A stretch of 64,000 nt of DNA from Thalia democratica (lineage: Eukaryota): positions 77,066,001 to 77,130,000 of the forward strand of contig OZ241830.1 in assembly GCA_965202585.1 (NCBI GenBank), given 5' to 3'. This document shows, one piece after another, positions 25,099 to 63,786 of the stretch. How positions within the stretch are numbered: position 1 is the first letter of the stretch; each line of letters starts with the position of its first letter. Under the pieces are notes generated by a model. That model made no database searches, had not been told where the DNA came from, and was given only the letters and a program-made list of their open reading frames with translations. The position numbers and the translations under genes are program-made.

Positions 25099-26439
25099 CT
25101 CTAAAGCTCACTACCATTGAAAACTTACATTTGGAAACAATTCAAACAAAATTTGTGTGAAACATTAAAACGTGACAAAACGTAACAGAACAAACACAAG
25201 TTGACGCCTCGTAAATTGGTAGACTTTAATCGATTATTTTATAATTGTTATACGTTTCTAAAGCTTTCTACCATCACAAACTCGTGTCGCAAAAATGTTG
25301 AAAGTAGTTTTATTAAAAAGCTCAAGTGATATGAGATAAGTAATAAAAAAAAGTCATAAACAAATACAAATAAACAAATATTAGCCTACACAACAAGACT
25401 TAATTTCACAGCTTTGTAGACTTTAATCGTGGTTTTTAAGTGTTGTTTGTTTTAATACACAACAAAACAACATTTTCAGCTTATTTTGTATCAGACTTTA
25501 TTTTGAGTTACACGGAAACTTTTTTAATTTAGAGACTTGTAATTTTTTTTACTTGTTCAGATTATATTATTCATTAGCGATTTTTTAGTTATACTTGCTA
25601 TTTATAAAATAAAAATGTTTAATGAATTGCATATATGTATTTATTCAAAAAGAAGAACTTTAATTTTTTATTAGTTATAACTTATCTTTCATTAAGATTT
25701 TGCAAATAATAAAGCCATATAAAATACAAAGGCATTAAAATTTTGTTGAATATTATAGAATAATAACTTAAAAGGTGTTCTAATTATTTTACGAGACTTT
25801 TATTATGATTAAATAAAATTAATAATACTGGTAAACCATTCTATTCAATCTAAGCATTATAATTAAAATTGAATCTAAAACATTGTATCTAATTTATATG
25901 TAAATTAAAAGTTTTAGTTTTCCTGCTTATATTAACAAAACTTTTATGCAAAACAGTTGTCTACTTAGACGGATTTTATTTGTTGACCGAAAACATAATA
26001 AATAACAAAAAGTTTTATTAAACTTCAAAGTCCTATTAAAATACAGTATAACGGTTATAAAGCACAAATATTTTAATTTTTTTACTAGCCTAAAACTATT
26101 ACTATTGCAATTAGATAAAAAATACTGAACTTTAGAACTCACGTATGTTTTACAACGTTTTTAAATAACTATTGAATTTGTGAAACTTAGTAAAATGGAG
26201 ATTCGAATAATATTTATGATGGTAGTGCTTACTTCTTTGTTGGATGCTCATCGAAGTACTGGTAAATTTCATGATCTATTAGTTAAGGAAAATTTCAAAA
26301 CTGTACTCAATAGGGCATCTGTTGAAGACATTGAAACTACAAGTACATCTATAAAAGAACTAACAAAAGAATCTATGATAAAACCTCAAAGTAGACCTTT
26401 GGTAAACTGGCCAAATAAACCTACTGTAAACCCTACAAA

Positions 26440-29400
26440 AGCATCTACTGCAGGGACCACTCAATTTACAGAAGCATCTACTGCAGAGACTATTCAATCT
26501 ACAGAAGTATCTACTGCAGAGACAACTCAATTTATAGAAACATCTACTGCAGAGACTACTCAATCAACAGAAGCATCTACCGCAGAGACGACTCAATCTA
26601 CAGAAGCATCTACTGCAGAGACAACTCAATCTACAGAAGCATCTACTGCAGAGACTACTAAATCTATAGAAGTATCTACTGCAGAGACAACTCAACCAAC
26701 AGAAGCATCTACTGTTGAAAGGACTCAATCTACAGAAGCATCTACTGCAGAGACTACTCAACCTACAGAATCATCTACTGCAAAAACTACTCAATTTACA
26801 GAAGCATCTATTGCAGAGACTACTAAATCTACAGAACCATCTATTGTAGAGACTACTCAATTTACAGAAGCATCTACTGCAGAGACAACTCAATTTACAG
26901 AAGCATCTACTGCAGAGACGACTCAATCTACAGAAGCATCTACTGCAGAGACTACTCAACCGACAGAAGCGTCCACTGAAGAAACTACTCATTCAACAGA
27001 AGCATCTACTGCAGAGACTACTCAATTTACAGAAGCATCTACTGCAGAGACTACTCAATTTACAGAAGCATCTACTGCAGAGACTACTCAACCTACAGAA
27101 GCATCTACTGCAGAAACTACTCAATTTACAGAAGCATCTACTGCAGAAACTACTCAATTTATAGAAACATCTACTGCAGGGACCACTCAATCTACAGAAG
27201 CATCTACTGCAGAGACAACTCAATTTACAGAAGCATCCACTGCAGAGACAACTCAACCTACAGAATCATCTACTGCGGAGACTACTAAATCTACAGAAGC
27301 ATCTACTGCAGAGACTACTCAATCTACAGAAGCATCCACTGCAGAGACAACTCAATTTACAGAAGCATCTACTGCAGAGACTACTCAACCTACAGAAACA
27401 TCTACTGCAGAGACTACTCAACCTACAGAAACATCTACTGCAGAGACAACTCAATTTACAGAAGCATCCACTGCAGAGACAACTCAACCTACAGAATCAT
27501 CTACTGCGGAGACTACTAAATCTACAGAAGCATCTACTGCAGAGACTATCAATCTACAGAAGCATCCACTGCAGAGACAACTCAATTTACAGAAGCATCT
27601 ACTGCAGAGACTACTCAACCTACAGAAACATCTACTGCAGAAACTACTCAATCTACAGAAGCATCTATTGTAGAGACAACTCAATTTACAGAAGCTTCTA
27701 CTGCAGAAACCACTCAACCTACAGAAGCTTCTACTGCAGAGACTACTCAACCTACAGAAGCATCTACTACAGAGACTACTTAGTTTACAGAAGCATCTAC
27801 TACAGAGACTACTTAGTTTACAGAAGCATCTACTGCAGAAACTACTCAATTTACAGAAGCATCTACTGCAGAGACTACTAAATCTACAGAAGCATCTACT
27901 GCAGAAACTACTCAATTTATAGAAACATCTACTGCAGGGACCACTCAATCTACAGAAGCATCTACTGCAGAGACAACTCAATTTACAGAAGCATCCACTG
28001 CAGAGACAACTCAACCTACAGAATCATCTACTGCGGAGACTACTAAATCTACAGAAGCATCTACTGCAGAGACTACTCAATCTACAGAAGCATCCACTGC
28101 AGAGACAACTCAATTTACAGAAGCATCTACTGCAGAGACTACTCAACCTACAGAAACATCTACTGCAGAGACTACTCAACCTACAGAAACATCTACTGCA
28201 GAGACAACTCAATTTACAGAAGCATCCACTGCAGAGACAACTCAACCTACAGAATCATCTACTGCGGAGACTACTAAATCTACAGAAGCATCTACTGCAG
28301 AGACTACTCAATCTACAGAAGCATCCACTGCAGAGACAACTCAATTTACAGAAGCATCTACTGCAGAGACTACTCAACCTACAGAAACATCTACTGCAGA
28401 GACTACTCAACCTACAGAAACATCTACTGCAGAGACAACTCAATTTACAGAAGCATCCACTGCAGAGACAACTCAACCTACAGAATCATCTACTGCGGAG
28501 ACTACTAAATCTACAGAAGCATCTACTGCAGAGACTACTCAATCTACAGAAGCATCCACTGCAGAGACAACTCAATTTACAGAAGCATCTACTGCAGAGA
28601 CTACTCAACCTACAGAAACATCTACTGCAGAAACTACTCAATTTACAGAAGCATCTACTGCAGAGACTACTCAGTTTACAGAAGCATCTACTACAGAGAC
28701 TACTTAGTTTACAGAAGCATCTACTGCAGAAACTACTCAATTTACAGAAGCATCTACTGTAGAGACAACTCAGTTTACAGAAGCATCTACTGCAGAGACT
28801 ACTCAATTTACAGAAGCATCTACTGCAGAAAGTACTCAATTTACAGAAGCATCTACTGCAGAGACTACTCAATTTACAGAAGCATCTACTACAGAGACTA
28901 CTTAGTTTACAGAAGCATCTACTGCAGAAACTACTCAATTTACAGAAGCATCTACTGCAGAAACCACTCAATTTACAGAAGCATCTACTGCAGAGACAAC
29001 TCAATTTACAGAAGCATCTACTGCAGAAAGTACTCAATTTACAGAAGCATCTACTGCAGAGACTACTCAATTTACAGAAGCATCTACTGCAGAGACTACT
29101 CAATTTACAGAAGCATCCACTGCAGAGACTACTCAACCAACAGAAGCATCTACTGCAGAGACTACTCAGTTTACAGAAGCATCTACTGCAGAGACTACTC
29201 AGTTTACAGAAGCATCTACTGCAGAAACCACTCAATCTACAGAAGCATCTACTGCAGGTACCACTCAACCTACAGAATCATCTACTGCAGAAACCACTCA
29301 ACCTACAGAAGCTTCTACTGCAGAGACCACTCAATCTACAGAAGCATCTACTGCAGAGACTACTCAGTTTACAGAAGCTTCTACTGCAGAGACTACTCAG

Positions 29401-30900
29401 TTTACAGAAGCATCTACTGCAGAGACTACTCAGTTTACAGAAGCATCTACTGCAGAGACTACTCAGTTTACAGAAGCATCTACTGCAGAGACTACTCAGT
29501 TTACAGAAGCATCTACTGCAGAGACTACTCAGTTTACAGAAGCATCTACTGCAGAAACTACTCAGTTTACAGAAGCATCTACTGCAGAGACTACTCAGTT
29601 TACAGAAGCATCTACTGCAGAAACTACTCAATTTACAGAAGCATCTACTGCAGAGACTACTCAGTTTACAGAAGCATCTACTGCAGAGACTACTCAGTTT
29701 ACAGAAGCATCTACTGCAGAGACTACTCAGTTTACAGAAGCATCTACTGCAGAGACTACTCAGTTTACAGAAGCATCTACTGCAGAGACTACTCAGTTTA
29801 CAGAAGCATCTACTGCAGAGACTACTCAGTTTACAGAAGCATCTACTGCAGAGACAACTCAATCTACAGAAACATCTACTGCAGAAACTACTCAGTTTAC
29901 AGAAGCATCTACTGCAGAGACTACTCAATTTACAGAAGCATCTACTGCAGAGACTACTCAGTTTACAGAAGCATCTACTGCAGAGACTACTCAGTTTACA
30001 GAAGCATCTACTGCAGAGACTACTCAATTTACAGAAGCATCTACTGCAGAGACTACTCAATTTACAGAAGCATCTACTGCAGAGACTACTCAGTTTACAG
30101 AAGCATCTACTGCAGAAACTACTCAGTTTACAGAAGCATCTACTGCAGAGACTACTCAGTTTACAGAAGCATCTACTGCAGAGACGACTCAATCTACAGA
30201 AGCATCTACTGCAGAGACGACTCAATCTATAGAAGCATCTACTGCAGAGACCACTCAATCAACAGAAGCACCTATTGTAGAGACTACTCAATCAACAGAA
30301 GCATCTACTGCAGAAACTACTCAATCTACAGAAGCACCTATTGTAGAGACTACTCAATCAACAGAAGCATCTACTGCAGAGACGACTCAATCTACAGAAT
30401 TATTTACTGTAGAAACGACTCAACCTACAGAAGCATCTACTGTAGAAACGACTCAATTTACAGAAGCATCTACTGCAGAAACTACTTAATTTACAGAAGC
30501 ATCTACTGCAGAGACTACTCAATCTACAGAAGCATCTACTGCAGAGACTACTCAATCTACAGAAGCATCTACTGCAGAGACGACTCAATCTACAGAAGCA
30601 TCTACTGCAGAGACGACTCAATCTATAGAAGCATCTACTGCAGAGACCACTCAATCAACAGAAGCACCTATTGTAGAGACTACTCAATCAACAGAAGCAT
30701 TTACTGCAGAAACTACTCAATCTACAGAAGCACCTATTGTAGAGACTACTCAATCAACAGAAGCATCTACTGCAGAGACGACTCAATCTACAGAATTATT
30801 TACTGTAGAAACGACTCAATTTACAGAAGCATCTACTGCAGAAATTACTCAATTTACAGAAACATCTACTGCAGAAACTACTAAATCTACAGAAGCACCT
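26440..30900 (+). repeat. 33-bp coding minisatellite (TTQFTEASTAE), about 135 units with higher-order structure
   Basis: Unit act act caa ttt aca gaa gca tct act gca gag; the marker gcggag recurs at 27275, 27506, 28033, 28264, 28495 (231 bp period). Confidence 0.97.
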
Positions 30901-33900
30901 ATTGTAGAGACTAGTACTAGTTCTACAGAAAAACCTACTTCTGATCCCACAACTAAACCTGTAGGAGGACCTACAAGTAAGCCTACTACTAAACAACTCA
31001 CAACAACTAAACCAACTACTACGGAGGCTCCTACTTGCTGGACAAATCCTGAATTTTGCAGTGCTACGGAGTACTGTAAGAAAATTGAGTATACCGGATA
31101 CGAATGCGTCTGTCTTCCAGGGTACTCAAAGCTGGATGCTGTAAACAGTACTTGTGCAGAAGGTAATTAAAAATTTTAAGTAGTAAATAGTTTTGATGAT
31201 TTTATTCGTAAATTGTAATTATAAAAGATATCATAAGTATGTTTATCTTTTTTTTTTTTTAAACCTATTAATTAAAGAAAAAAAAAACTGATGGTCAAGT
31301 TATACATTTCTCTTACATCATTGTGCAAATTAAAGCTTATTAAAATGAGCTATGTCACTTAAAAAAGTTTTTAAAACTTTATGTTTCTAACTTAAAAAGT
31401 TAGATAGCATAGTGCTGAAGTAAACATTTAAAATCTCTGCTAGCAATTTTTTTTTTTCTGTTTTATGTATTTACTACTATGTGAGTAATTTCTGAGTTTT
31501 GTTGTACTTATAGCAGCATATTAATTTAAAAACTAAACAGCAAGTAAATTAAAAACTTTAACACTTATTTAAATGTTTTAAAACAGTTAAGTTTAAAAGT
31601 ATGTAGTATTTATCAAACTAATCACTAGTTTATAAGCACTTTTATACAGCTTTACTTCAATTTTTTGTTATTCTGTTACTCAAATAAAGTTACTACACAA
31701 CTAAATTTTTAATAAAAAATATTTTTTGTAGTGAAACAATTTGGAGGACAATTTGTGTTCGATTCCAGTACAAATGATTATGACCTAAGAACTATTTATG
31801 ACGTAATAAAAGTTTATGAAGCAAGAATAACAAAACATGACCTGGAAATAGACGTAGAGAGTTTTGTGAGTTTCAAAAAAGATTTTAACAACTTTCACAC
31901 TAGCTTTTGTATTTTTTAGCAAAATAAATTGTTGTGTATTTAATGCTGTTTTTATTCAAACCTTACTATTGAAACTTATGTTTTCAATTTTACTACCTAT
32001 TTGTTATGAGCTAAAAATTTAAGTAGTCACGTACATATGTTTGGTTTTAGTTATGTCAACAAGTCGTTTACAGTTTTATTAAAATGTGTTTGTTTATTTC
32101 CGCTTAGTTTGAACTTAAACATAGTAAATTGTAACCCAAACTGAATAAAACAACTATATTTTATTAAATAAATAAATAAATATATATAATGGTTTTAAAC
32201 ATCTTTAACAGGAATAAAGCGTGAGTTGTTCTAATATTTTGTTTTAAGTATTATTTAATATTTAAAAATTTGTATGCTGTTTAACTATGGACTTACAAGA
32301 AAATAAAAAATATTAATACTTTTCAAACCTATTTATATGGTTATATCAATACTAATAGCAATTTTGAAGGTATACTTAAAATTTTGAATTTTAGGTATGC
32401 TCAAGTTTTTTAAACTAAGTTATAAGTTTATAACATCTAATTAAAATAAAACATGATAAAAGTACTTGAATTTAAACTTTAAATTTATAATTTAAGATTC
32501 AGATCATTTTACAATACAACTTGACTTTTTACTGTGGAGTTTGTACGAATAATAAACCTTTTGTCGCTGGCTAGTTATCAATAAAATAAAAATTTGTTAT
32601 TTCAGCTTGACGAAACATATAACGACACAACTAGCTACGACCACTCTGACGTAGTGTGTACGTCACAATCAAGTCAAATTTTGTGCGATTACGTCACCGT
32701 TTTCGAAGCTGAAGTGTTTACAAAAGATGGTTTGAGCCAAACAGATGTTGAAGAAGAAGTTATAAAAGAAATTGAAACTGCAGTAAGATACAAGTTATTG
32801 TTGGTACTTGATCAAAAAATTGATATTTTTGTAAAAAGCTAGTAGTTCTTAAACATTTAAACTGTAGTTTACACTAACTAGAACATCAAAAAAAAAAAGA
32901 TTTTCTTTAAACAGTGTAATACGAGTTGTAGCATAGGAGGAATACCGCTTAACGAAGAAAAATCTATAGAAAAAGTTGGAGGTGAAGTTTTACTTGAAAA
33001 TATTTATGTTTGAATCTTTTTGTATCAGTAAACGTTCTAAATATAAATAGAAAATTAAAACCAACTACTATATCATATTTACAATAAAATTTCAGTTATT
33101 GCTGATGCTTCAAAGCTATGTGGAGACAGCTGTGATACTTCATCAACTTACTGTGACGTCATAAGCGATGGAGACTACATTTGTGTGTGTCAGAATAAAT
33201 TCGTTCCAATAGACGGAACAAAAGCTACTTGCGCAAGTTAGTTATTAAAAAACAACTAACCCGTTAATTGATTATTTTAATAATTAAAAAAATATGTACC
33301 AGTTTACTGAATTTTTTTACCTTTACAGAGAAACGATGTACAAGTAATTATGATTGAAACGATCCGTTTGGTACTTGCAATTCTGGTGCTGATAATGGGG
33401 TAGGTGTTTGCGAGTGTATGACTCTTTTCAACGGAGAAAACTGCGAAGATCGTTAGTTTTTATAATAAAAAGATAACTTTATTAAAATTTCAAAGAAAAA
33501 AACTTACACTTTATAAAACTATAAATTTATATTCTAATAAGCTTGAAAACTAAAATAAAGTTTTATCACAAGGAAAGGTGGACGAACTTTAAAGCTGTCT
33601 ATAATAAATGAGACCTTAAAGAAATGTCTTTTACTAACAATTTTTCATAAACATTCTAACTATATTATCATACAGCATTGTTATCAAGCATAATTATGTT
33701 AATATTAATTGAAGCCTGTACAAAAAAGACACAAAATTTTGTAGCAGTATTTGTTTAACATTTTAACAACTTAATCTCTATCAATAAAACTTTTTTTTTT
33801 CAAATATATTTTTTAATTTCAGCCTGGTTGTTCGTACTCGTAATAGTGGCCGGTCTCGCCGTTTTGATTGGACTCGTGGTTGCTTTGTGGAAGTTTTGTT

Positions 33901-36991: not shown

Positions 36992-37891
36992 ATGTCTGTT
37001 GAAGCTGAAATTAAAGCATTAGTTGAGTCCTCCAAAATTGGGAAACAGCTGAAAGAAAAACTGATTGCCATTGGAAGCAAGAAGGACAATGAATTTAGTT
37101 GTTTTCAAGCTGAGATGCTTAAATTGAAGAAAGATTATAATGAAAAAAGTAGAATTATTGAAAATAACATTGATCAGATTCAAAAAGATGAATTCAGCAG
37201 TAAGAGAATAGACAATATAGAAAATAGAATTACAGAATTACAAAAAAGTTTCTCAGAATTTAAGTCTGATTTTTCTTCTAAATTTAACAAGTTTGAAGCT
37301 AAATTCTCCAAATATGCTGATGCTATGCAGAAAAGTGAACCAACAGAAATTATCACAAACATTAGTACCAAATTAAATTTAGTAGCAGAAAAAATAGATG
37401 CTGAAAATGAACAAAAACTGAAAGAAAAGAAGGCTTTAAATGTAATAATATTTAACATTCCAGAAAGTAAAAATCCAACTCATAATGCACTAGAAAGTTG
37501 CAAAAATGATCTAAAAATAATTCAACAAGTATTAGGAGAAAATAAAATGAAAAAAGAAGAATTTAAGTCACTTTATCGAGTTGGTAAAATTGCAGCTAAC
37601 AAAATCAGACCAATTATAGTCAAATTAAATAATTTGGCATCCAAACACAGACTGTTAAGACTGAAAGATTTGAAAATGTTTAATGGTGAAATTGAATCAA
37701 AAGTCTACATAAACCCTGACAGAACTCTCTTGGAAATTGAAGCTTTCAGAAAATTGAGAAAAGAAGTTAAAATAAAGCAAGCCATTGCTGATGAGAATAA
37801 ATTGGACATAAAATATGTTATAAGGAACAACAAGATAGTTGAACTGACAAAACAGCCCTTTCGTTACCGCTCCCAGGACATCTGGGATTAG
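36992..37891 (+). CDS. LINE ORF1 (coiled coil + RRM-like/CTD)
   Basis: 299 aa intact; coiled coil followed by LNVIIFNIPES...YRVGK...RPIIVKL...VYINPDRT, typical of this ORF1 class. Confidence 0.85.
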   Translation: MSVEAEIKALVESSKIGKQLKEKLIAIGSKKDNEFSCFQAEMLKLKKDYNEKSRIIENNIDQIQKDEFSSKRIDNIENRITELQKSFSEFKSDFSSKFNKFEAKFSKYADAMQKSEPTEIITNISTKLNLVAEKIDAENEQKLKEKKALNVIIFNIPESKNPTHNALESCKNDLKIIQQVLGENKMKKEEFKSLYRVGKIAANKIRPIIVKLNNLASKHRLLRLKDLKMFNGEIESKVYINPDRTLLEIEAFRKLRKEVKIKQAIADENKLDIKYVIRNNKIVELTKQPFRYRSQDIWD

Positions 37892-40789
37892 TGGAGGAAA
37901 TCGTGAGTCAACGGGTATAAACTTATTAAGTGATAGGATTAATTTTAACACTAACAAGTTTTCCTATATAAATTGTAACAACAACTATTTAAAAGTTTGT
38001 TACACTAATATAAGATCTGTTTTAAATAAATTTTATATTTTAGAGAACTATATAAATTTGAATAACATTGATTTATTTTTTTTGACTGAAACATGGTTGA
38101 CTAATAAGGTCAACGATGCCACAGTGTGTTCTTTTAACTATAACATTTACCGAAGTGATAGGTCTAGTAGGGGTGGAGGTGTTGCTATCCTTTTCAAAAA
38201 TTCGCTTAAAGTTATTAAAGTTAAAAACGATTCTATCTCTACTAGCAACATCAATTTTGAATACCTATGTGTAGATGTAATTTTTAAAAAGATGAAATTA
38301 AGATTTTGTTGTGTCTACCTTCCTCCACTGTCTGCTAGATGCGCACTGACTGTTCAAAATGTAATCAAAATGATTAAAATGGTTTTTCCAAAAGAGTGTT
38401 CTTTTTATGTTCTTGGTGATTTTAATATGCCAAATATAGATTGGAGGATTCCTAGCACAGATTTCAATAAACCCCATGAGTGTTTTCTTAATTTTTGTAC
38501 AGACAATTTTTTAACCGAAGTAATTGAAAATCCAACCCATAAGAATGGTAACATTCTTGATCTCATAATTTGCAATCATTTTGGTCTAGATAGAATCATA
38601 TCACACTCAACTAATTTTCCATTAACAAACACCTGTGACCATAACTTGCTTTCACTAAAAATTAAAATTGAAAATAAAATAGTACCTATTGCTAAAGAAG
38701 TCTCATATGACTATAAAAAAGCAGATTTTGAAAGCATCAATGATTTCCTGTCAAAAATTAATTGGACCTCTTTATTTAAAAATTCAGAAAATCTCCAGCA
38801 TTTCTACGATCAATTCATCAGCTCAATCCAAATCTCAATCAAACGTTTTGTTCCAATTTTTTCTAAAAATAACAAAAGTAAAAAATATCCATCTCATATT
38901 AAAAAGTTATTAAAAGAAAAAGCGAATCTATACAAAAAAAAAAGACAAATAAATCACTTTTGATAAAATACAAAAACAAGTCTAAAGAATATCAATTAGC
39001 TGTTAAAAAATACAACTTTGAATATGAAAACAAATTCTGCAAAAACCCAAATTTAAAAAAGTTTTATAGCTACGTGAAATTTAAACTTAAGTTAAATAAT
39101 TCCATACATCTCTTATATGATAATGATAAAAACAAAACAGTAACCTCAGATTTTGAAATAGCAACACTTTTTAACATAAATTTTCAAAAAGTTTTTAAAA
39201 AAGACGAGAGTTACTAGTCTTTTAAGCTACCCCAAAAGAATTGTAGTAAGATGCAAAATTTTTTCATAACCTATGAAGACATTATAAGTTCAATTAACCA
39301 TTTAAAAGATAAAATCATAAGAACGCCAGAAAACATTCCACCCTATTATATCAAGCATGTTATCCAATCAATAATATTTCCACTTTCATTAATATTTAAT
39401 TGCTCTCTAGAACTATCTGATGTTCCTAAACAATGGAAAACATCTTTTATTATTCCTGTGCACAAGATAGGTAATATACACGATGCATTAAATTACAGAC
39501 CAATATCTCTAACAAGTGGCTTTTCAAGAATTTATGAACATATTGTATCTGTAAAAATTCTCAATCACCTCTTTGATAACAAATTATTAACTAACAAACA
39601 GTTTGGTTTTGTTCCAAACCGCTCATCAACCATTCAACTGTTAACATGCTTACATTCTTGGTTAGTTCCTTATCTCAAAAATGAATTTACTAAAGTAGTT
39701 TATACGGATATTCAAAAAGCCTTTGATTCAGTATCACACAAAAGATTATTAAAAATTTTAAATCAGTATGGGCTACATGAAAGCTTAATTGATTGGTTTG
39801 ATAACTTTTTAAATAATAGATCACAAAGAGTACTCATCAATAATACGCTTTCTGACTCTTTAACAATCTACAGTGGAGTACGACAAGGTGGTGTAGTTGG
39901 TCCCCTTCTCTTTTTAATTTATATTAATGATATTTGTTCAAACATTGATATTAAAAGTGAGTTAAGCTTATTTGCAGATGATGCCAAAATCTTTAGTCAG
40001 TCAAATACTTCATTACAACTATCTTTAGATAATATTTACATATGGTTAAAAACAAGAAAACTAAACTTAAATCCTAGCAAATGTAAAATTCTAACCATTA
40101 ACAAAAAAGAATCTTCTCCAACTGACCTCTTAATCAATAACATCAAGTTACCAGAAATTAAAGTTTTTAAAGATTTAGGAATTTATATTTCCAAAGATTT
40201 GAAATGGAATGAACATATCAACTATTTATATAAGATTGCAAAAACTACATGTTATCAAATATTGAAAAGTTTTAAAACTAATTCTGCTTCAATTCTGACA
40301 AAACTATTTAAAACATACGTTCGCCCTAAACTTGAGTTTAGTACCCAAATTTGGTCACCCCATTTAAAAAAGGATATTAACAAAATTGAATTTGTGCAAA
40401 GGAGTTTTACCCGTCATATTTGTAATCGTTGCAACATATCTTACACGTCATATAATGATAGAATGATTAAATTTGGATTGAAATCACTGGAATATAGAAG
40501 ATGGGAATTTGATTTATTAATTCTTTACAAAATTATCAATGGCAAATATAAAAGTTTTTTTAACCAGTTTTTTAATTTTTCCCAAAATAAATATCAACTA
40601 AGAGGAAATAATTTGAAAATAAAATGTAAACATGATTTTCAAAACAGTCAGTGGCAAGGCGCATTTTTTCACAGAGCAAAAGCTATGTGGAACAGACTAC
40701 CTCAGGATATAGTATCTTGTGAGAGGGTAGAAGGTTTAAAGCTAAAAAGATTTGACTTAAATACGATAAATACCAGTAAAATTAACTAA
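37848..40789 (+). pseudogene. LINE ORF2: apurinic endonuclease + reverse transcriptase, with two lesions
   Basis: YTNIRS..LTETWL, YRSDR..GGGV, LGDFN, ILDL (APE); YRPISLTS, QFGF, DIQKAFDSV, SGVRQG..GPLLFLIYIND, LFADD, YVRPKLE (RT). Frameshift in the A-run near 38933-38943 and TAG at 39215. Confidence 0.92.
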
Positions 40790-41255
40790 TTTTCCACTGT
40801 AACAAAAGGAAAAATATTCGTTTCCCTACGCCTCCCCCCTACAAACTATTAGTTTACTTATATATTTTGTAGTTATGAATATTGTTTTATAAGCCATGAT
40901 TTTAGACAAACTTCTTTACTGTGTGTACTAAGTAATATATAAATTTGAATTTTTTGAACTGAATTTTCAATTTAGTTCATTTGTTTATCATATTGTGTTT
41001 AACTTTGTGTTTCCATTTAAATTATGTTTGTATATATATATATATATGTATAATTTATCTTAAAGTTTTGAATATAAGTTTATTTTCTTTTTCTCTTTTT
41101 GTGTGTCCTGTTTAAGTGGCTCAGGTTTTGATGCCTGAGTCCAACATTGCACAATAAACAATATAATAATAATAATAAACTAAAAACATTTGTTATTTCC
41201 TTACTTAATTTGTTATGACATATTTTTTAAGAACTTCATTCTAAACACTTAATTA

Positions 41256-41986
41256 CTTGGTCAACTTCGCAAAGTAAAGTTCGTCCGTCGTATAGTATGT
41301 TTGATTAACAAATTATTATGTTGTTTAAAAAAAACTGACTTGCTTATGGCTGTAAAAGTTACTAAGAGAAAATAATAAGATATTTTGAAGTAACTTTATT
41401 TTTGGTCTACTAAACTAAAATACTATTTTGGTAATTTTACATATATTAAAGTTTTAGAAGTAACTTCAAGTAAAGTTTAATACTTTGTATTACTTTGCTC
41501 TTAAAAAGGTTCTATTAATAAAAATTAGAGACTAGTTTTATTGTTTCATTTTAATTTTATGTACACTTTTCAATATACATCATTACAATGTTAATCATTA
41601 AAAACACCTAATTTATAAAATACACGTTATATTAATGCGACTTTTATTATTTTCCCATTGTTAAATTTTATTGTTCCACTTTTCAATATACTTATTTTTT
41701 AGGTTTTATTTTTGTACAAACTCGAATTCCTCGTTATTTTATAACGAATTAAAATAAATTTATAGAGTATATTATATATAATATTTATTATAACAGAAAG
41801 TTGTGCACATTTAATTTTAATATTGAAATGTAAGTTGAAGATTAGCAAAGTTGTATCGAACAGTTGCAATTGTAACTTGACCAAGGTGTAAAAACTACCA
41901 AGACTGGGAAATTTTCAAAGCAACCCTGAAAACAAAATCAATCATACTTTAGGAAGGACGAACTTTACTTTGCAAAATTGAACTAG
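41256..41986. mobile_element. TA-flanked MITE with ~30-bp TIRs
   Basis: TA|cttggtcaacttcgcaaagtaaagttcgtcc ... ggacgaactttactttgcaaaattgaactag|TA. Confidence 0.55.
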
Positions 41987-42670
41987 TACTTTAAGTGTTT
42001 GGAAAAAGATTGTTGAAAAAATATGTCATAACAAGTTAATTACTGAAGTAAAATTATTATTCAATTAGTTCTCGGAAATAGTAGTACAACTAGTTTCGTT
42101 TTATGTAACAATAAAATGTGGTCAAAATAATAAATTTAATCTATTTACTGTAAACATAGTTTACTTTGGTCAATGAATTTAAAACATTTGAAGTAAAAGT
42201 AAGCTACAGTTGAAACAGGTTTAAGTTTTTGTATATAGGCATTGTCTGGTTTTTTTAAGGCGTAATTCTAATTAAAAATAAGTTTCAATGTTTGTCAAGT
42301 ACTCACGATTAAAACTGTTTTGACACTAAAACCACTTTTACACAAAATTCAATTACAATTATCATCGGTATTTTAATCTTTTTGTCATAAATACTGCAGT
42401 AATTTAAAACTATTAAATATCTGTTGTTATACTAAAAGTTTAGTTTAAGCAGTTATTCATTTACTTTTACTTTATTTACTTATGTATATAATTAAGAAAC
42501 ATAATCTAAGTAGCAGTTTAAAAGTAAAAAGCTTTATCTCTATTAGTAGTTTAAGTTTTACAGTTTATACTAACAGGCTAAAATGAAAGAATTGAAGTTT
42601 ATCTATTTTTTTGACAGATTTTTTTTTTAATTCAAAGTTTTTTTAAAAGTAAAACATTGTAAGTTCTGCT

Positions 42671-44413
42671 ATTGTATCATTTATTATACGGTCTAGTACA
42701 CTACAGACTGGAACTATGTTTGTTTACTTTTTTTTAAAGCACTAAGAACATCTTTAAATTGATGAAATGTAGATCAATAGAAATTAGCATCACATTTTAA
42801 AATATATTAAGTTTAGAAGTTGTAACTTAGTATCAATTTTTAATCTACTTCTAAGAAAAAAATAAAAATATTTGTCAGTTATTAACTTTATACACACATG
42901 CTGGTCAACAAACCATTTCAGGCTGGTTTAATTTTATTTGAAAACATTTGTACGATAAAATTCACATGTGAGTAAAACTAAGCGGTTAATAGAGTAAGTT
43001 CAAACGAATAAATCTGATTAAAACAGGTAGTCAGCCGGCAAAGAAACGCGCGGGAAAACTTCGCGCGAGCAACTTTCAAAGTTCGCGCTCGCAAATAAAC
43101 GGTAACCAGTAGTCGCCCCTGTTGACCAACTTGTGGTGCTTATTATATTCATATGTGTTTAGTCCAGCCGGATCGTAAATCCAGTAGACGTACGGAAGTG
43201 CTGACGGGGTGTCGTAGAGCTCAAGGACTTCTATTTCGACCTCTTGACCGTCGCCAACGCGCTTCCAACTGCCCGAAGAAGAATCGAACGTGATGCCCAG
43301 TTTTAATGGGAACTCCTCCACGATGCCTAGAGCGTCCTCCAACTCCCTGTAAACGTGTATTTTGAGTGGTAACTTTGCACGAGCTGTTAAACGTACCAGA
43401 AAGCTCTTAGTTTTTATTTTTTGAATAAAACGCTTTTCAACAAATGATAGAAAAAATATACTAGCTAACAGAGTTGATACTGTAAAAGTAAACTTTATTA
43501 AAAAAAAACAGTATGCGTTGCACAATTGCCGGTAAACAAAACAGTTTACATGTTTTTCTCTTGACAAGCTGATGCACATATTTTAGGTTTTGTTAAACTT
43601 TCACTAACTGTCTGCCTTCCTCCGTGTAAACCCTGGGGACGTACTGGATGAGGTCTCCCTCGTACGTTTCCAGGCAGTACTGCCTAGCATCATCCAAATT
43701 CATATTTTGATTAACAAACCAATGTTGATATTCTGCAAAACGAGGATAAACTTTGACGGTCAATCCGCTCGGATTTTATTTAAAAACGTTAACAAGTTTG
43801 TGAATATATTTTTTTTGTACTTTTGATTTTTCAGCACAGTTAAGACTTTTGACAATTTTAAACATACCTTTGACGCCGGAGTCCAAATTTGCAACTGAAA
43901 AATATTTTTGTTCAATTAAAGTAAAATAGTTAAAGAACCTGTACACATAGTAAAAAGTAAAAAATGAGCGTTTGAACTTTAATATTTCTGAAATGATTGC
44001 AGTTAGAACGTTGGCATCATAGTTGAAAGAAAAATTTAACTCTACAGTTTTTTAACCCCAATTAGTAAATATTAACTATCTAAACTAAAATTTTAAAATC
44101 AGATAATTTTTCTTTGTAGATCAGATTTATATTTCGGTCGAAAGAAACCACATATATATGATATTTTTACTGAACAAAAAAAAGCATAACAAGTTTATTT
44201 TCAACATAAGAAAAGTATAAAAATAGTAAACATTATAAAATATACTGAAACATAAAAGTTACTTAAAAAAAACAGTTGGCAAGACTTACAATGGAATTTC
44301 ATATTAAAGCAGCTGTTAAGGACATCATCCCAGCAACACCCCACGCGAATGCATTCGGCTCTGGTTATAAGTTCGATTTAATAAAACAGTCAAGTTTTTG
44401 TTGTGTGTGTGAG
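42671..44413 (-). pseudogene. 5'-truncated duplicate of the trefoil/C-type lectin gene (same orientation as 61189-62944)
   Basis: About 97% identical by eye, introns included. Exons 44360-44290, 43894-43868, 43732-43609, 43346-43076 keep open frames and splice sites; the signal-peptide exons are missing. Confidence 0.85.
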
Positions 44414-44458
44414 TCAGTTTTTTTTTAATAACGTAATAATTTGTTTATCAAAAATACT

Positions 44459-45562
44459 ATAATCATTTGTACTGGAATCGAACACAAATTGTCCTCCAAA
44501 TTGTTTCACTTCAAAAAATAGTTTTTATTAAAAATTTAGTTGTGTAGTAATTTTATTTGAGTAACAGAATAACAAAAAATTGAAGTAAAGCTGTATAAAA
44601 GTGCTTATAAACTAGTGATTAGTTTGATAAATACTACATACTTTTAAACTTAACTGCTTTAAAACATTTAAATAAGTATTAAAGTTTTTAATTTACTTGC
44701 TGTTTAGTTTTTAAATTAATATGCTGCTATAAGTACAACAAAACTCAGAAATTACTCACATAGTAGTAAATACATAAAACAGAAAAAAAAAAATTGCTAG
44801 CAGAGATTTTAAATGTTTACTTCAGCACTATGCTATCTAACTTTTTATATTATAAAAACTTTTTTAAGTGACATAGCTCATTTTAATAAGCTTTAATTTG
44901 CACAATGATGTAAGAGAAATGTATAACTTGACCATCAGTTTTTTTTTTCTTTAATTAATAGGTTTAAAAAAAAAAAAAAAAGATAACCATACTTATGATA
45001 TCTTTTATATTTACAATTTACGAATAAAACCATCAAAACTATTTACTACTTAAAATTTGTAATTACCTTCTGCACAAGTACTGTTTACAGCATCCAGCTT
45101 TGAGTACCCTGGAAGACAGACGCATTCGTATCCGGTATACTCAATTTTCTTACAGTACTCCGTAGCACTGCAAAATTCAGGATTTGTCCAGCAAGTAGGA
45201 GCCTCCGTAGTAGTTGGTTTAGTTGTTGTGAGTTGTTTAGTAGTAGGCTTACTTGTAGGTCCTCCTACAGGTTTAGTTGTGGGATCAGCAATAGGTTTTT
45301 CTGTAGAACTAGTACTAGTCTCTACAATAGGTGCTTCTGTAGATTGAGCAGTTTCTGCAGTAGATGCTTCCGTAAATTGAGTTGTATCTGCAGTAGATGT
45401 TTCTGTAAATTGAGTCGTTTCAACAATAGGTGCTTCGTAAGGTTGAGTAGTCTCTGCAGTAGATTCTTCTGTAAATTTAGTTGTGTCTGCAGTAGATGCT
45501 TCTGTAGGTTGAGTAGTCTCTGCAGCAGATGCTTCTGCAGATTGAGTTGTGTTTATAATCAT
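44459..45562 (-). pseudogene. Inverted partial duplicate of the mucin gene (PTS tail + EGF1 + intron 1 + first 50 nt of exon 2)
   Basis: Reverse complement of about 30700-31781; the EGF is identical to the parent; donor retained at 45066; in-frame ATG at 45562 comes from flanking DNA. Confidence 0.9.
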
Positions 45563-45735
45563 TAAAAAACTTGATCAGTTAACATCTTAGATTCAAAACT
45601 GTGTACATACAAATACTACAGACTAATAATTGTGTGAGTCAGAATCTATTTTTACAGAAGTAGATTGTATAAGTACTTACATATTAATAATATGTAAAAA
45701 ATATTGCAATATTAACACATAAATAATATTGAATC

Positions 45736-46369
45736 TTATATGAAAGCTTAAAGTACAAACTACAAGCCAGTTTTTATAGAATTAAAAAATATTATTTAAC
45801 TTTTGAGATATTCTAAATTTTATAAAAAGTTTCCAATACAAACGTATAAATTGCAAGTTTTTCTAGGTCAATTTTCTTGGAATACTAAAACATCACTAAA
45901 AACCTATTTTCTCCTTCATTTTTTGAGATAGAGACCTCAAATTTTCAGGAAACGTTCCTTTTATAATTCAATAGACTTTGAATGTTGGAATTTTAGAAAT
46001 ATTAAAAAATAAAAATTTTAGTTAAAACAAACAAAAAATATACGTGGTTTTTTTTAATAAAATAAAAGTTTTTAACAAAAAAAAATTCCTGTACTCAATC
46101 TTTTTAAAATTTTATAATACTCTTTCTGTAAAAATTTGAATAAGATTGCTTATAAAATGAAGGAGGAGATAGATTTATAGTGAAATGGTCTTTTTTGCAG
46201 TTTTAGTTTGCGCCTTTCATTAGGAACCTATTGAGGTCACCGACTTTGACTGCTCATATCTCAAAAAATACTTTGAAATTTTTCAAACGGTTAAAAGTTT
46301 CTGATAGCTCGGATAAAACTTTATAGAATAAGACCAACTTGTAAAATCAAGGTGGACCCCCCTATGCCC
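45736..46369. mobile_element. Kolobok-like MITE lacking its left end (same family as 5968-6659)
   Basis: Collinear with 6019-6659; ends ggtggacccccctatgccc|TTAA. Confidence 0.75.
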
Positions 46370-46446
46370 TTAAGCTTATTGTGTAAGTTAAGAATATTTC
46401 ATATTCTATTAATAATTCATAAAAGTTCAAAAACAATAGTATTGAG

Positions 46447-46779
46447 TAGGGGTGGGAAATGTGTGACCTGTAGACCAGAATCTGCCAGCAAACAGAACTC
46501 TGTGGCTGTGAAGTATTTTTTCAGCTTTGCAGAAAACAAATAAAATTAAGCTCTTACTAGCAATAACTATACAATGTATTTTTAATTTATTTTTAGTACT
46601 CAGTTGTTTTTAATGAACCAGTGATTTAAACAATTAGTTTCAAATCTTTTTTTTTCTTTGTGGTTGTAAAAATATTCAAAACTACATAGCCCACTAAAAC
46701 TTCTTTTTAAAAAGTCTAGCCAAAGAGAGAATTTTTCAAGCAAATTTGGCCTACCAACTAAAGAAGTTTTCCATCCCTA
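46447..46779. mobile_element. hAT-like MITE
   Basis: taggggtgggaaa ... ttttccatcccta; flanks gtattgag/gtataaaa (5/8). Confidence 0.6.
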
Positions 46780-48951
46780 GTATAAAAGTACATAAAGTGT
46801 TTGTCAACTTAGACAAGAATGTAGTATTTGTGCAAACTTATCAACTATAAAAACAATGATTAGATTTATTTGACAAAACGAAACCAACTTGTTTTCATAG
46901 GAAGTAGAACACATCTGGTTGTATTCTTGCTGCTCAGCATAAGTGTGTGTTGAGCTGACAGGCTTCAATTCCAGGCTGACTTCTGTTGATTGTGGCTCCT
47001 CTGCTTGTAAAACATCCATTTGTTCTTCACCTTCTTATTTATATTAAACTTATTAGATAAGTTTACTAACTATTCTTAAATTGCATTAGTAAAACATTTA
47101 CTATATACCTTAGTACTTGTATATGTTAGTTTTTTTAAAACCACAACGATCAAATTAAAAAAAAACCCATTTTTATACATATTTCTGTACAGTGAATATT
47201 GTCAAACTTTGTTATTAAAACCAAGTGCATACAGTTTTTAATACGATATTTCTAAGTGTACTTCTAATATATAAACACCTTAAATTATCAAAAATGTGTA
47301 TTTGCTTTATTAGGAAGAATCTAAAAAAAAATGCAAAAAAAAGGTATGCCGGCCAAAAAACTAGTTTAAACCCCAAAAATCACATATTTTTCACATTAAA
47401 CAGTAATGAAATCACTTGTACATGTCCTAGACTTATAATTTATAAATGAAAGTTTATACTTATTGATATAGATTTAAAGACATATTAACTGCTTTTGATG
47501 TATTATGACAATAAATATACAAACTTTGTCTGTAAAATAATGATTTGTGGAATATTGAAAAGCATAGCTGGTCAGTGATTTTAATTAGAAAAAATATTGA
47601 AATACATAAATTTTTGGCTATACTTACTTACCTTCAAAAGTTTAGGTGATGTGGTGTGCATGTCAACGGGATAGTTCATAGCTTTAAATGTTTAAAAAAC
47701 CCTTAAAAAACTATTCAATTAGCATTAGAAGAAATTAATGAGATATAAAAAAGTTATGATTTATTATAGTTAATTTTGTATGGCATTAAACATTAAATTA
47801 ATGATTGCAAAATAAAGACTTTACAAAAAAATAAAAAACATTGCAAAATAAAACAAAAATTGTATCATTTTGTATTAACACTTAACATTGTTGCAAATGA
47901 CTGATACTTTTAGAAGTTTTTGTATAAAAACACAAGTTATAGTTGTGTGAGTGAGAATCTATTATAAAAAGAATTAAATTGTTTAGTATACTTGAACTTT
48001 GTTTCAAAAATACTCTACAGAGTATTTTGTAACATATGGACTCTGTGGCTATAATTAATAGTTATTTTTCAAACTCATTCATGAATATTTTGACAAGTGT
48101 GTCTTTATTTAGCATTCACTCACTATGCACAATATGGTTTTTTTATTTTCTACCTGCTTCAAAAAGTTGTTACATCAATGACTACAAAAACTGTATAGTT
48201 TTGGCAAATGTGGCAAAACAATTGAAATTAAATAATAACCAAAATGATTTTGCAAAAGTTAAATTTAATGCTATTACCTGATGAGATAAAGGCTTTTTGC
48301 TAAATATAATCAATGTCGTACAAATTGTTAAGTAATAAGCTTATTTTAAACAAAAAAAGAAACAATTTTGTAAAATTAAGAGTTAAACGCTTAATTTATA
48401 TGTCTTTATAAAGTTGTCAATGTAGTTTATATGAGCTTAATGAATTACTGTAGCTTAAATATTAAACAATGTGTCAACCAGTTATCGCCAATGTAGTAAA
48501 AAAGGTAGAAACTACGAAAAACTTTGAAAAGAATGAATAATAAGAATTAAATTAAAACAGTTTATTTTTTACAAAATAAAAAGTTTAAGGTTTAACATTA
48601 TGTAAAATAAAAAGCATTTTATGTTCGAAAAAGCTAAAAACCACCCTGCCATGCTAAGATAGTGTTTCAATTTGTAGTTTTTATGAATTCTCTAAAGTCT
48701 TACATTTTAATGTGACATCACAATAAAATAGTACTTTGCAAAATATTTTTTTCAATGAATATTCTTTTGAGAAAAGCACTTGTAGTAAAAACACCTTAGA
48801 TGCTGTAGGTGTAAAGTAACTCTAAAACTTTCTTTTTCTTTTTTATACTGTTTATGTGAGCTTTGTAGAACACTTAAGCAAACTGTATTTGATTGTCAAT
48901 ATTTTTGAAAACAAAACTTGATGACTGTTGCTCATTTTATCTTTTAAAACT

Positions 48952-49650
48952 CTTATATTTCTTCATTGTGTGAGTAAGTTTAAGAAAGCATTTGACCTAG
49001 TTTGGCATTCAACAGTCTTGAAATTTATGTTGATAACCTATACTATTTTTCTCATGCAATACTTTGAAAAAATTCATTATTCAATCTTCTAGTTCATCAC
49101 AGAATCACATATCTTTATTCATAAAAATTGTGATAATACTTACAAGTATGGCGTGTTCAGACAAGATCAATTGGCTTGAATGCACTTACTTGATGCAAAA
49201 AAAATCATCAAGAGGCTTTAAAAACTTGCATCTCAGTCTTTGAAATCTTTGAGACATCAATATAAAGTGAAACAAGTAGAGAAAAATTCAAAAGAATTCT
49301 TATACTTCTATATTGTGTGAGTAATTTTAAGAAGGCATTTGACCTAGTTTGGCAACCAACAGTCTTGAAATTTATGTTGATAACCTATACTATTTTTTTC
49401 ATGCAAAACCTTTGAAAAGATCTTTATTTTATCTTCTAATTCATCACAGAATGCATGTATTTTTATTCATAAAAATTGTGACAAGTTTTTATACTACAAG
49501 CATGACATGTTCAGACAAGATCAATTGGCTTGAATGCACTTACATGATGCAAAAAAAAAATCATCAAGAGGCTTTAAAAACTTGCATCTTAGTCTTTGAA
49601 ACATCATTGTAAAGTGAACTGAGTAGAGAAAAATTCAAAAGAATTCTTAT
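48952..49650 (+). repeat. ~350 bp tandem duplication of a decayed LINE RT fragment
   Basis: Two copies, about 85% similar by eye; first copy reads KFKKAFDLVWHS, resembling RT motif DFxKAFDxVxH. Confidence 0.6.
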
Positions 49651-52248: not shown

Positions 52249-52353
52249 GGACAAGAATTAAAAAAAAACAAAGGGCTACGGCCGGTCGATGACACGGTGC
52301 TTCGCACCTGTCATCTCTCCGGCCTGCCCTTAGTTTTTTTTTAATTCTTGTCC
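52249..52353. other. 105-nt GC-rich imperfect hairpin; right arm and flank repeated at 52477-52560
   Basis: ggacaagaattaaaaaaaaac-aaagggc..ggccgg..gatgac..ggtgc-TTC-gcacc..gtcatc..ccggcc..gccctt..-gtttttttttaattcttgtcc. Confidence 0.8.
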
Positions 52354-53338: not shown

Positions 53339-53630
53339 CAGGGTTGCCAAAAAACCTAGAACTTGTGAAATTTTGAAAAAACCTTGAACTTTAAACAACT
53401 TTTACATGTTAAGTAGTAGAATCTTGGTTTGACGCGAATAATCTATCAAATGTATAAATACTTTTTGTCATCATATTTTTTTTATTTAAAAATACATTTA
53501 AAGTAGCTTCATAGTAATGTTGTTATGCTGTTTAACACAGTTTTTTTTACCTTAAACTTAACTTTTAACTAAATATAGAACAATGAACGTGTAATTTGAA
53601 AAACCTAGAAGAAACCCAGGGGCAACCCTG
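53339..53630. mobile_element. MITE, CAGGGTTGCC-ended family
   Basis: cagggttgcc ... ggcaaccctg; flanks atcatt/atcata (5/6). Confidence 0.8.
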
Positions 53631-60732: not shown

Positions 60733-61593
60733 AACCAGGATACAGTCAATGTCATGTCTAGGACAAAGGCCAGACAAAAGTGCATGAAATAAACTTTAAG
60801 CGTTTTGTGGACAGCTTATAAGCGGGAGATTGTTAAATTTCGGACAGTCGTATAACTTTAAATACTGACTTGCTATTTTGCTAAATTAAGCTTGGTTTTA
60901 AATAAACAACCCCAAGGTAGTGTTTAGCTAAAATCTTTTTTCTCGAGTAAAATGTAAAAGTTAAATGTAGGTAACAAAATTCCCAAAGTAAAATACATCG
61001 CCCCTTTAGTCAACTGTTTGGGTATTTTCGGCTGTTAGGAGGCAATAAGTTGCGAAAAGTAAACAGTTAATTGACTGGAAAAGTGGTAGTAGTTTTCAAA
61101 ATTGTGCAAAGGGAGCGATTCTAAAAACGAGTTTGAAAAAATATGCTTAAAACAAGATTTGGATACAGGAATTTGATTGGTTCATATGATTGTATCATTT
61201 ATTATACGGTCTAGTACACTACAGACTGGAACTATGTTTGTTTACTTTTTTTTAAAGCACTAAGAACATCTTTAACTTGATGAAATGTAGATCAATAGAA
61301 ATTAGCATAACATTTTAAATAATATTAAGTTTAAAAGTTGTAACTTAGTATCAATTTTAAATCTACTTCTAAGAAAAAAATAAAAATAATTGTCAGTTAT
61401 TAACTTTATACACACATGCTGGTCAACAAACCATTCCAGGCTGGTTTAATTTTATTTGAAAACATTTGTACGATAAAATTCACATGTGAGTAAAACTAAG
61501 CGGTTAATAGAGTAAGTTCAAACGAATAAATCTGATTAAAACAGGTAGTCAGCCGGCAAAGAAACGCGCGGGAAAACTTCGCCCGAGAAACTT

Positions 61594-63786
61594 TCAAAGT
61601 TCGCGCTCGCAAATAAACGGTAACCAGTAGTCGCCCCTGTTGACCAACTTGTGGTGCTTATTATATTCATATGTGTTTAGTCCAGCCGGATCGTAAATCC
61701 AGTAGACGTACGGAAGTGCTGACGGGGTGTCGTAGAGCTCAAGGACTTCTATTTCGACCTCTTGACCGTCGCCAACGCGCTTCCAACTGCCCGAAGAAGA
61801 ATCGAACGTGATGCCCAGTTTTAATGGGAACTCCTCCACGATGCCTAGAGCGTCCTCCAACTCCCTGTAAACGTGTATTTTGAGTGGTAACTTGGCACGA
61901 GCTGTTAAACGTACCAGAAAGCTCTTAGTTTTTATTTTTTGAATAAAATGCTTTTCAACAAATGATAGAAAAAATATACTGGCTAAATTCAAACAGAGTT
62001 GATACTGTAAAAGTAAACTTTATTAAAAAAAAAACAGTATGCGTTGCACAATTGCCGGTAAACAAAACAGTTTACATGTTTTTCTCTTGACAAGCTGATG
62101 CACATATTTTAGGTTTTGTTAAACTTTCACTAACTGTCTGCCTTCCTCCGTGTAAACCCTGGGGACGTACTGGATGACGTCTCCCTGGTACGTTTCCAGG
62201 CAGTACTGCCTAGCATCATCCAAATTCATATTTTGATTAACAAACCAATGTTGATATTCTGCAAAACGAGGATAAACTTTGACGGTCAATCCGCTCGGAT
62301 TTTATTTAAAAACGTTAACAAGTTTGTGAATATATTTTTTTTTTGTACTTTTGATTTTTCAGCACAGTTAAGACTTTTGACAATTTTAAACATACCTTTG
62401 ACGCCGGAGTCCAAATTTGCAACTGAAAAATATTTTTGTTCAATTAAAGTAAAATAATTAAAGAACCTGTACACATAGTAAAAAGTAAAAAATGAGCGTT
62501 TGAACTTTAATATTTCTGAAATGATTGCAGTTAGAACGTTGGCATCATAGTTGAAAGAAAAATTTAACTCTACAGTTTTTTAACCCTAATTAGTAAATAT
62601 TAAGTATCTAAACTAAATTTAAAAAAAGAGATAATTTTTTTTGTAGATCATATTTATATTTCGGTCGAAAGAAACCACATATATATGATATTTTTACTAA
62701 ATAAAAAATAAAACATAACAAGTTTATTTTCAACATAAGAAAAGTATAAACATAGTAAACATTATAAAATATACTGAAACATAAAAGTTACTTTAAAAAA
62801 AACAGTTGGCAAGACTTACAATGGAATTTCATATTAAAGCAGCTGTTAAGGACATCATCCCAGCAACACCCCACGCGAATGCATTCGGCTCTGGTTATAA
62901 GTTCGATTTAATAAAACAGTCAAGTTTTTGTTGTGTGTGTGAGTGAGTAAAAATTTTTTTTTAATTTGTGGTATATTCTTGGCGACTTTGAAAGACAACT
63001 AATAATAAATAAATAAATTCTGTTTATACATTTAATAAAGTTACTGTATTGTTGTTATTTAATAGAACTTAAAATTTTTTGTTTAAATAATTTTTTTGCA
63101 GTTAAATAAAATAAACATATTGATTTCATTTACAATTATATGTTTGGGTATTAAAAGCACCTTACACATTAATACATAAATCTTTTTCTTTTATGATATA
63201 CTTTTTTTTTTTCGCAAACACAGCATAGCTGTTCATATTTACGGGCATTTGTTTAGAAGTTAGAAGCATCTCCAAACATCAAAACTTTTGTATACAAAAC
63301 AATATAATTAAATAAACATTTATATTACTTAAACTGTTTTTTGTTCCGAAAAAAGGATTTTTTTTTGGGACAGTTTGGTATTTACTTCCTTTAGTATGTA
63401 AGCATGATTATCTACATTTTGTTTAATAACTCACTTCGGTTAATTAAAAACAAACGTTATTTTAAAGACAAACATACTGCGGCGTACGCACTTGGTCACC
63501 TTGATCGTGAAAAAGTCAAAACTTTAAAACTAACTTTTTTTTCCGTGTCATAGTTGCATTTTTCGTTCGCGTCACACGAGGTCGTAAAAGACGATTCACC
63601 GGCATTTTCTGTTTGGAATGTTAAAATTAAGTTGAAAACATCAAAAGTTCAACATCGAAACTTCAAAACCCAAAGAACCGACTCACTTAAAGCGTTCAAG
63701 GGTGAAGCGGTCGCGGCGAACTCCAAGCTGAGGCAGTCGGCTTGGACAATCAGCAAGATGGCGGCGACACAAAAAGTCCCTTTCAT
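61594..63786 (-). CDS. Secreted protein with a trefoil (P-type)-like segment and a C-terminal atypical C-type lectin domain
   Basis: Exons 63786-63687 (signal peptide MKGTFCVAAILLIVQADC), 63608-63535, 63499-63478, probably 63388-63329, then 62890-62820 (AECIRVGCCWDDVLNSCF), 62422-62396, 62258-62135 (MNLDDARQYC..GD), 61864-61594 (LGITFD..GSWKRVGDG..FICEREL*). The junction into the trefoil exon is not resolved. Confidence 0.75.

Follow-up and report, generated by a model that had tools for sequence, protein, structure and literature searches.

In Drosophila, tandem duplications and rearrangements give rise to chimeric gene structures (Rogers, Shao and Thornton, 2017, PMC5460883; Yang et al., 2008, PMC2211543). 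In Drosophila affinis, exon-shuffling hotspots named 'tinkering loci' are small regions that gather, duplicate and rearrange gene fragments, and most of the composites are not working genes (Weisman, 2025, bioRxiv 10.1101/2025.10.28.685065). The fusion described here is an event of this known kind. It lies in Thalia democratica (assembly GCA_965202585.1), on contig OZ241830.1, below called C6. The window is the whole stretch analysed, 64,000 nucleotides at C6:77066001-77130000 in a genome of 802 Mb. It is very AT-rich eukaryotic DNA, with a G+C content of about 26%. On its minus strand a fragment of a membrane mucin gene, with repeats rich in proline, threonine and serine (PTS) and an epidermal growth factor (EGF)-like module, stands upstream of a 5'-truncated copy of a lectin-like gene. 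The fusion lies in the first unit of a tandem array, a unit with an internal deletion, and is most likely a mosaic of gene relics without a function, a possible non-productive transcript included. The fusion is most likely a by-product of a decaying duplication zone, not a working new gene.

The locus resembles the Drosophila chimeras (PMC5460883; PMC2211543) in its young segmental duplication, which sets pieces of two unrelated genes on the same strand, in the repeats at its breakpoints and in a possible composite frame. Unlike them, it owes its fusion to a secondary microhomology deletion in an existing array, and its 5' partner is a promoter-less internal fragment. The Drosophila studies (same sources) rest on RNA-seq, whereas the fusion and the other composites of this locus are known from DNA alone. 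The gathering, duplication and rearrangement of gene fragments within a small region, most composites not being working genes, is shared with the 'tinkering loci' (bioRxiv 10.1101/2025.10.28.685065). Unlike those, this window draws its fragments from loci that are neighbours or paralogues, in a marine animal whose genome is very rich in AT.

Positions above 64,000 continue the window numbering past the window end; 110 kb of flanking sequence was added to the window for the array analysis. The array extends from 42671 to about 132563 (C6:77108671-77198563). It consists of about 4.2 head-to-tail units with a period of 22,248 bp. The lectin piece is present in five copies, L0 at the left end and four more (C6:77108671, 77127189, 77149437, 77171685, 77193933). 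The mucin piece of the first unit, M0, is followed by three others, M1-M3, at the same period of 22,248 bp (C6:77132671, 77154919, 77177167). Unit alignments give 99.45-100% identity. Over 22,248 bp units 1 and 2 show one mismatch; unit 3 is almost identical to them. The first unit (unit 0) is about 2% diverged from the next up to about 54 kb and identical beyond. Read contigs of the L1-L3 type are about three times as deep as the flanking contigs at 42402-42603. The near-identity of the units suggests that they were amplified or converted very recently, or possibly over-duplicated in the assembly. The lectin gene at 61.2-62.9 kb, named as the parent in the preliminary description, is one of the four further copies in the array.

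On the plus strand a full unit reads lectin piece L, a 2.9 kb segment S, a 0.9 kb repeat E, mucin piece M and about 15.6 kb of flank. The two pieces are separated by 3.7 kb, the mucin piece on the upstream side. In the first unit the end of L directly abuts the last 47 bp of E, followed by M, with the junction at 44414/44415. In the other units the same L end runs on into S, and those 47 bp form the end of a full E that adjoins M. The interval missing from the first unit is 62945-66673, 3,729 bp, and its breakpoints share the 3 bp AGT. The distance from L0 to L1, 18,518 bp, agrees to within 1 bp with the period less 3,729 bp. Every other unit shows L and S colinear, and so does a paralogous locus at C6:22.2 Mb, 90% identical; because of the colinearity in this paralogue, L without S is the derived state. 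By self-BLAST and alignment, 42671-44429 matches 61189-62965 in direct orientation (97.2%), and 44459-45559 matches 31781-30670 in inverted orientation (93.9%), the EGF exon being 100% identical. Fragments of the two genes are contiguous and both code on the minus strand, as first described. The roughly 45 bp between them are present, but they are the end of the dispersed repeat E and not random filler. Several copies of E elsewhere terminate at the identical base.

Read from these junctions, the fusion, as assembled, comes from a single 3,729-bp microhomology deletion within the first unit of the array. Before it, the array already had the mucin piece on the upstream side of an entire lectin-like gene. 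The deletion took away exon 2 of this gene, the exon that carries its start codon and signal peptide, its promoter region and all but a remnant of E. The four surviving lectin-like exons now follow the EGF exon of the mucin downstream, at a distance of about 0.7 kb. Recent exon shuffling of two genes had been proposed; a young juxtaposition with a frame-compatible splice path stands, while two separate copy-and-paste events joined by filler are replaced by one deletion in an existing array. Capture by a Helitron or Pack-type element was considered and set aside, the parents being local and the array-plus-deletion model accounting for all junctions.

Table 1. Coordinates of the fusion locus, of its source genes and of the repeat at the junction (window positions).
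Feature	Position	Strand	Remarks
Repeat E, full copy	41291..42175		in opposite orientation to the copies of the array units; 92.1% over 890 bp
L0, 5'-truncated lectin-like gene copy (last four exons and 3' untranslated region)	42671..44414	-	left end of the array; 97.5% to 61189-62944 and to three copies beyond the window
Last exon of the C-type lectin-like domain (CTLD), with stop codon	43076..43346	-	coding part identical in all five copies
First CTLD-like exon	43609..43732	-	holds the sole two coding differences from L1-L3 (43661 E/Q, 43652 L/V), both amino-acid changing
Linker exon, 27 nt	43868..43894	-	phase-1 acceptor and phase-1 donor
Exon X, native 71-nt exon 3	44290..44360	-	second half of the trefoil-like Cys-rich part; AG/GT sites intact; found by tblastn with P0006
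Remnant of repeat E, last 47 bp (50 with the AGT microhomology)	44415..44461		identical E-to-mucin junction at 66674-66720; 90% match to 41291-41340
Copied 5' part of the mucin intron after the EGF exon	44462..45066	-	alignment to 31162-31781, 11 substitutions in 602 sites
M0, copied 3' end of the giant PTS exon	45067..45559	-	some 7 of the 33-bp repeats, unique sequence rich in Thr/Pro, EGF-like module; ancestral GT donor retained
Proposed ATG	45560..45562	-	in flanking non-mucin sequence, common to all four mucin-piece copies
Parent membrane mucin, first exon	26195..31161	+	signal peptide, 135.8 repeats of 33 bp, EGF
L1, next array copy of the lectin-like gene	61189..63786	-	complete six-exon gene, frameshifted by the 8-A run ending exon 2

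EGF and CTLD-fold modules normally lie outside the cell and have disulphide bonds. The composite frame would join both. The signals first listed for it, an ATG at 45562, a phase-1 donor AAG/GTAATT after 45067, a phase-1 acceptor before 43894 and a stop codon at 43078-43076, are all exact. The spliced frame is open as claimed (four exons, 918 nt, 305 codons), but only if the native exon X, with intact AG and GT sites, is silently skipped. Spliced after the EGF exon, exon X shifts the frame and brings a stop within itself, giving a 186-aa product with three downstream junctions after the stop. If the region is transcribed, exon definition should include exon X, and the premature stop would probably lead to nonsense-mediated decay. 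The 305-aa product would require the skip and would also lack a signal peptide: its N-terminus, MIINTTQSAE..., is without a hydrophobic stretch, in agreement with the first description. An in-frame stop stands 5 codons upstream of the ATG. Because of in-frame stops just before the ATG, an upstream exon cannot supply a signal peptide in frame. A search of the flank at 45563-61188 for upstream exons or a promoter found only a multi-copy exon-like open reading frame (ORF) at 47034-46807. A poly(A) signal and a 3' untranslated region (UTR) are inherited in L0. With duplicates that differ by only about 2%, an open frame would be the default expectation.

Between L0 and L1, 2 of 493 exon sites and 26 of 1247 non-exon sites differ (Fisher p=0.01). 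Both exon changes are non-synonymous, as are the two changes private to L4. Between M0 and the parent mucin the counts are 2/279 in exon and 11/602 in intron (Fisher p=0.25). The EGF module is indeed identical to the parent while the copied intron is a few percent diverged, as had been pointed out, but this difference is not significant at that p value. The contrast in the lectin piece could come from G+C-rich exons set against low-complexity introns, or from gene conversion. A clear sign of purifying selection is absent in both comparisons. The letters that mark L0 are, on the coding strand, C at 43652, where all other copies have G, and G at 43661, which L4 shares, together with the 3' UTR letters at 43065 and 43070.

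The mucin fragment of each array unit is promoter-less and consists of the last PTS repeats, the EGF exon and part of the next intron. In M1-M3 the splice donor is lost (GAAG/GT changed to GAAATT); M0 and the parent retain GT. An extra 33-bp repeat at about 45422-45454 is specific to M0, and A at 45336 is a further marker of this piece. The EGF-like module of M0 has the six-Cys pattern and is matched by several EGF-type Pfam models at E 0.004-0.25, all below the cut-off.

The parent mucin gene occupies 26195-33995 on the plus strand. Its PTS repeat unit is 33 bp (11 aa), and the EGF module is followed by a further exon. Later exons encode a second EGF-like module (33059-33238) and a transmembrane segment (33759-33995). 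Membrane-tethered mucins of the MUC3/12/13/17 type have EGF modules. The parent resembles these in its signal peptide, long PTS tandem array, EGF module, further EGF module, transmembrane helix and tail. It differs from them in that a SEA domain was not detected and that the PTS exon is broken in the assembly. The damage, claimed from the outset, is borne out as a 1-bp deletion near 27548 and five in-frame stops at 27781, 27814, 28705, 28903 and 30487. Three of the five stops share an identical repeat variant, so that the stop-bearing repeat unit itself was amplified.

The six-exon lectin-like gene encodes a small secreted protein composed of a signal peptide, a trefoil-like Cys-rich part, a linker and one CTLD-fold domain. 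In L1, exon 1 is at 63786-63687, with its ATG at 63786 and a hydrophobic signal peptide (tblastn with the family proteins P0005 and P0006). Exon 2 (63608-63535) and the 71-nt exon (62890-62820) form the Cys-rich part, with a GCCW motif. The six-exon structure with the 71-nt exon is canonical, because a spliced metatranscriptome contig (L030, JGI 3300018897) includes the homologous exon. This contig matches a paralogue on another contig (C2:23042000-23044900, about 23.0 Mb) at 100% in five exons and at 98.4% in the last exon and 3' UTR. The paralogue is expressed in ocean metatranscriptomes (a Tara-type contig), and the species is sampled there. A reading of exon X as the last exon of a preceding CTLD was rejected; it is the second half of the trefoil-like part. 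In L1-L3 exon 2 ends in 8 A (63535-63542 in L1), against 7 A in four paralogues; the resulting +1 frameshift leaves a coding sequence of 667 nt with an early stop. In L4 a nonsense codon stands at this position.

An exhaustive HMMER search with the last exon retrieves only 8 representative clusters in 1.84 billion proteins, and two of these (P0005, P0006) are spliced metatranscriptome products. The family proteins are about 220-230 aa long, trefoil-like plus CTLD-fold, secreted, invisible to Pfam and taxonomically narrow. Pfam Lectin_C (PF00059) gives no match at E<=1 for exon 4, P0001, P0005 or P0006, and a PDB profile search with the family gives 0 matches. The Trefoil model (PF00088) reaches P0006 residues 40-61 at E=0.28 and 11.5 bits, against a cut-off of 21, a resemblance of GCCW-type motif only. 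A domain model of a family member (P0014:92-228; pLDDT 72.5, pTM 0.68) has CTLDs as all of its top 50 Foldseek PDB matches, with TM-scores of 0.55-0.67; P0014, a paralogue and not the window protein itself, shares 40% and 65% identity with the two CTLD exons of the window. A model of the whole of P0006, from an 11-row alignment, had pLDDT 32 and was discarded. Language-model neighbours of the domain are also Lectin_C. The CTLD-like domain carries an N-terminal WF...ARQYC motif and a C-terminal FICE motif. The translated window exons contain only two Cys, and no EPN/QPD or WND motif is seen in their long-loop region. The domain thus resembles CTLD proteins in that the C-terminal domain model of a family member matches only CTLD structures. 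It departs from them in that neither Lectin_C nor a PDB sequence matches it, that it has just two Cys and that EPN/QPD and WND motifs are not visible. On the model, the lectin part is predicted to be a divergent CTLD-fold domain. The 'duplicated C-type lectin' of the preliminary description therefore holds at the level of fold, on the model of a family member, but not for Pfam Lectin_C and not as a multi-CTLD lectin; a single CTLD-like domain accompanies a trefoil-like part. As a by-product, the analysis yields a small, narrow family of secreted trefoil-like/CTLD-fold proteins that Pfam misses.

A working protein is disfavoured because the native exon must be skipped, a signal peptide is missing, stops stand upstream of the ATG and every sister copy is degenerate. 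Three points weigh against regarding the stretch as a mosaic of relics. M0 is the only mucin piece of the array that retains the GT donor, and its donor phase matches the acceptor phase of the lectin piece. The frameshift of L1-L3 lies in a homopolymer and could be an assembly error. The lower divergence of the lectin exons (p=0.01) could reflect constraint, though both exon changes alter the amino acid. A relic mosaic nevertheless remains the probable reading, and the open composite frame in duplicates 2% diverged serves as a warning: such a frame is no evidence of a gene.

A read-through or repeat-driven transcript that includes exon X, meets its premature stop and is degraded, or at most serves as a long non-coding RNA, is unlikely on the whole. 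In its favour, the locus keeps every inherited splice site and the poly(A) signal intact, and chimeric structures from tandem duplications often alter expression in Drosophila (PMC5460883). Evidence of a promoter is missing.

Quite improbable is a newborn chimeric gene, transcribed from upstream of 45562 and spliced from the EGF donor to the linker exon, past exon X, into a PTS-EGF-CTLD protein. The open 305-codon frame, canonical GT/AG sites with matching phase 1, the donor retained by M0 alone, the inherited poly(A) signal with its 3' UTR and the less diverged lectin exons speak for it; a very high-copy repeat 160 bp upstream could in principle supply a promoter. Against it, a native exon with intact sites has to be skipped, the signal peptide is missing and upstream extension is blocked by stops. 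The clearly decaying pieces M1-M3 have the same ATG and open PTS frame, and all coding changes are non-synonymous. The collections searched gave no matching protein or transcript contig. Exact-pattern scans of metagenome and metatranscriptome contigs for the end of the EGF exon followed by a non-G base (any spliced product) and for the junction of linker and CTLD exon found none in collections that may lack near-identical records, each being a weak test. Protein searches with the PTS-EGF exon, the last lectin exon and P0006 as queries, again weak tests, returned no chimeric or array-type product. If expressed, the fusion would be a very young exon-shuffling event in which both parents, the intermediate state (in the other units) and the exact breakpoint are still visible, and a clean natural example of duplication and deletion fusing modules. 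As it stands, the locus mainly documents a fast-evolving, pseudogene-rich duplication zone.

The junction 44414/44415 could also be an assembly artefact, or the deletion could be confined to the assembled haplotype or a single read; the chance of this is small. The read evidence consists of DNA-like Logan contigs (runs X1-X15) placed on 41200-46200, which are short and dominated by paralogous copies. Among the longest contig pieces listed none bridges the deletion junction at 44412-44461 (9,537 further pieces exist), several L0-specific letters are absent from the contigs of X1 and X2, and units 1-3 are suspiciously identical, with the single mismatch given above. The contig joints listed for 41200-46200 are uninformative, having sides of 20-27 nt in low-complexity sequence. 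On the other hand, an assembler mis-join at just 3 bp of homology would be atypical. At 42671 contigs from two runs, X3 (from another sample) and X4 (a marine metagenome), run across the left boundary of L0 and of the array with 95-96% identity. L0-type letters are present in X3 (for example 42791, 42816, 42871, 42918 and 43466) and in X1 at 43929. Logan contigs drop minor variants, so that absence means little.

A bolder proposal takes the deletion allele, expressed from the repeat-rich upstream sequence with exon X skipped, either as a newborn gene for a PTS-EGF-CTLD protein without a classical signal peptide or as a regulatory chimeric RNA, and takes the 90 kb array as a marine-animal counterpart of the Drosophila 'tinkering loci'. 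It is highly speculative. Two independent insertions, of a lectin fragment and of a mucin fragment, joined by templated filler are the least credible account, since, although local templated insertions occur and the filler matches the nearby 41291-41340, the same filler-to-mucin junction is continuous with a full E in three other units, the L0-L1 spacing fits the period less the deletion within 1 bp, and L without S is derived by the colinearity of the paralogue.

Other elements of the window and the array are as follows. A tandem repeat with a unit of 161 bp, about 10 copies and a higher-order period of 476 bp (58985-60732) adjoins the lectin piece on its left in every unit. A 434-bp inverted repeat (92%), with arms at 60765-61188 and 64550-64983, flanks the 3' part of the lectin-like gene and part of S. 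The orientation of the lectin-like gene relative to the flank is opposite to that at C6:22.2 Mb, which suggests an inversion. A repeat at 45709-46200, about 160 bp upstream of the proposed ATG, is extremely abundant, its summed contig depth being at least 10^5 in each of the three organism runs. It contains an inverted repeat, and a copy with 80% identity lies at 6004-6483. The exon-like ORF at 46807-47034 (minus strand) is open over 76 codons and G+C-rich. It is present in every array unit, at C6:22.2 Mb and on contig C1292, and in more than 12 copies at C6:67.5-67.9 Mb, several of them exactly 33,579 bp apart. It looks like another tandemly amplified gene family. A non-LTR (long terminal repeat) retrotransposon lies at 36992-40789 on the plus strand and contains three large ORFs, the second with an Exo_endo_phos endonuclease and the third with an RVT_1 reverse transcriptase.

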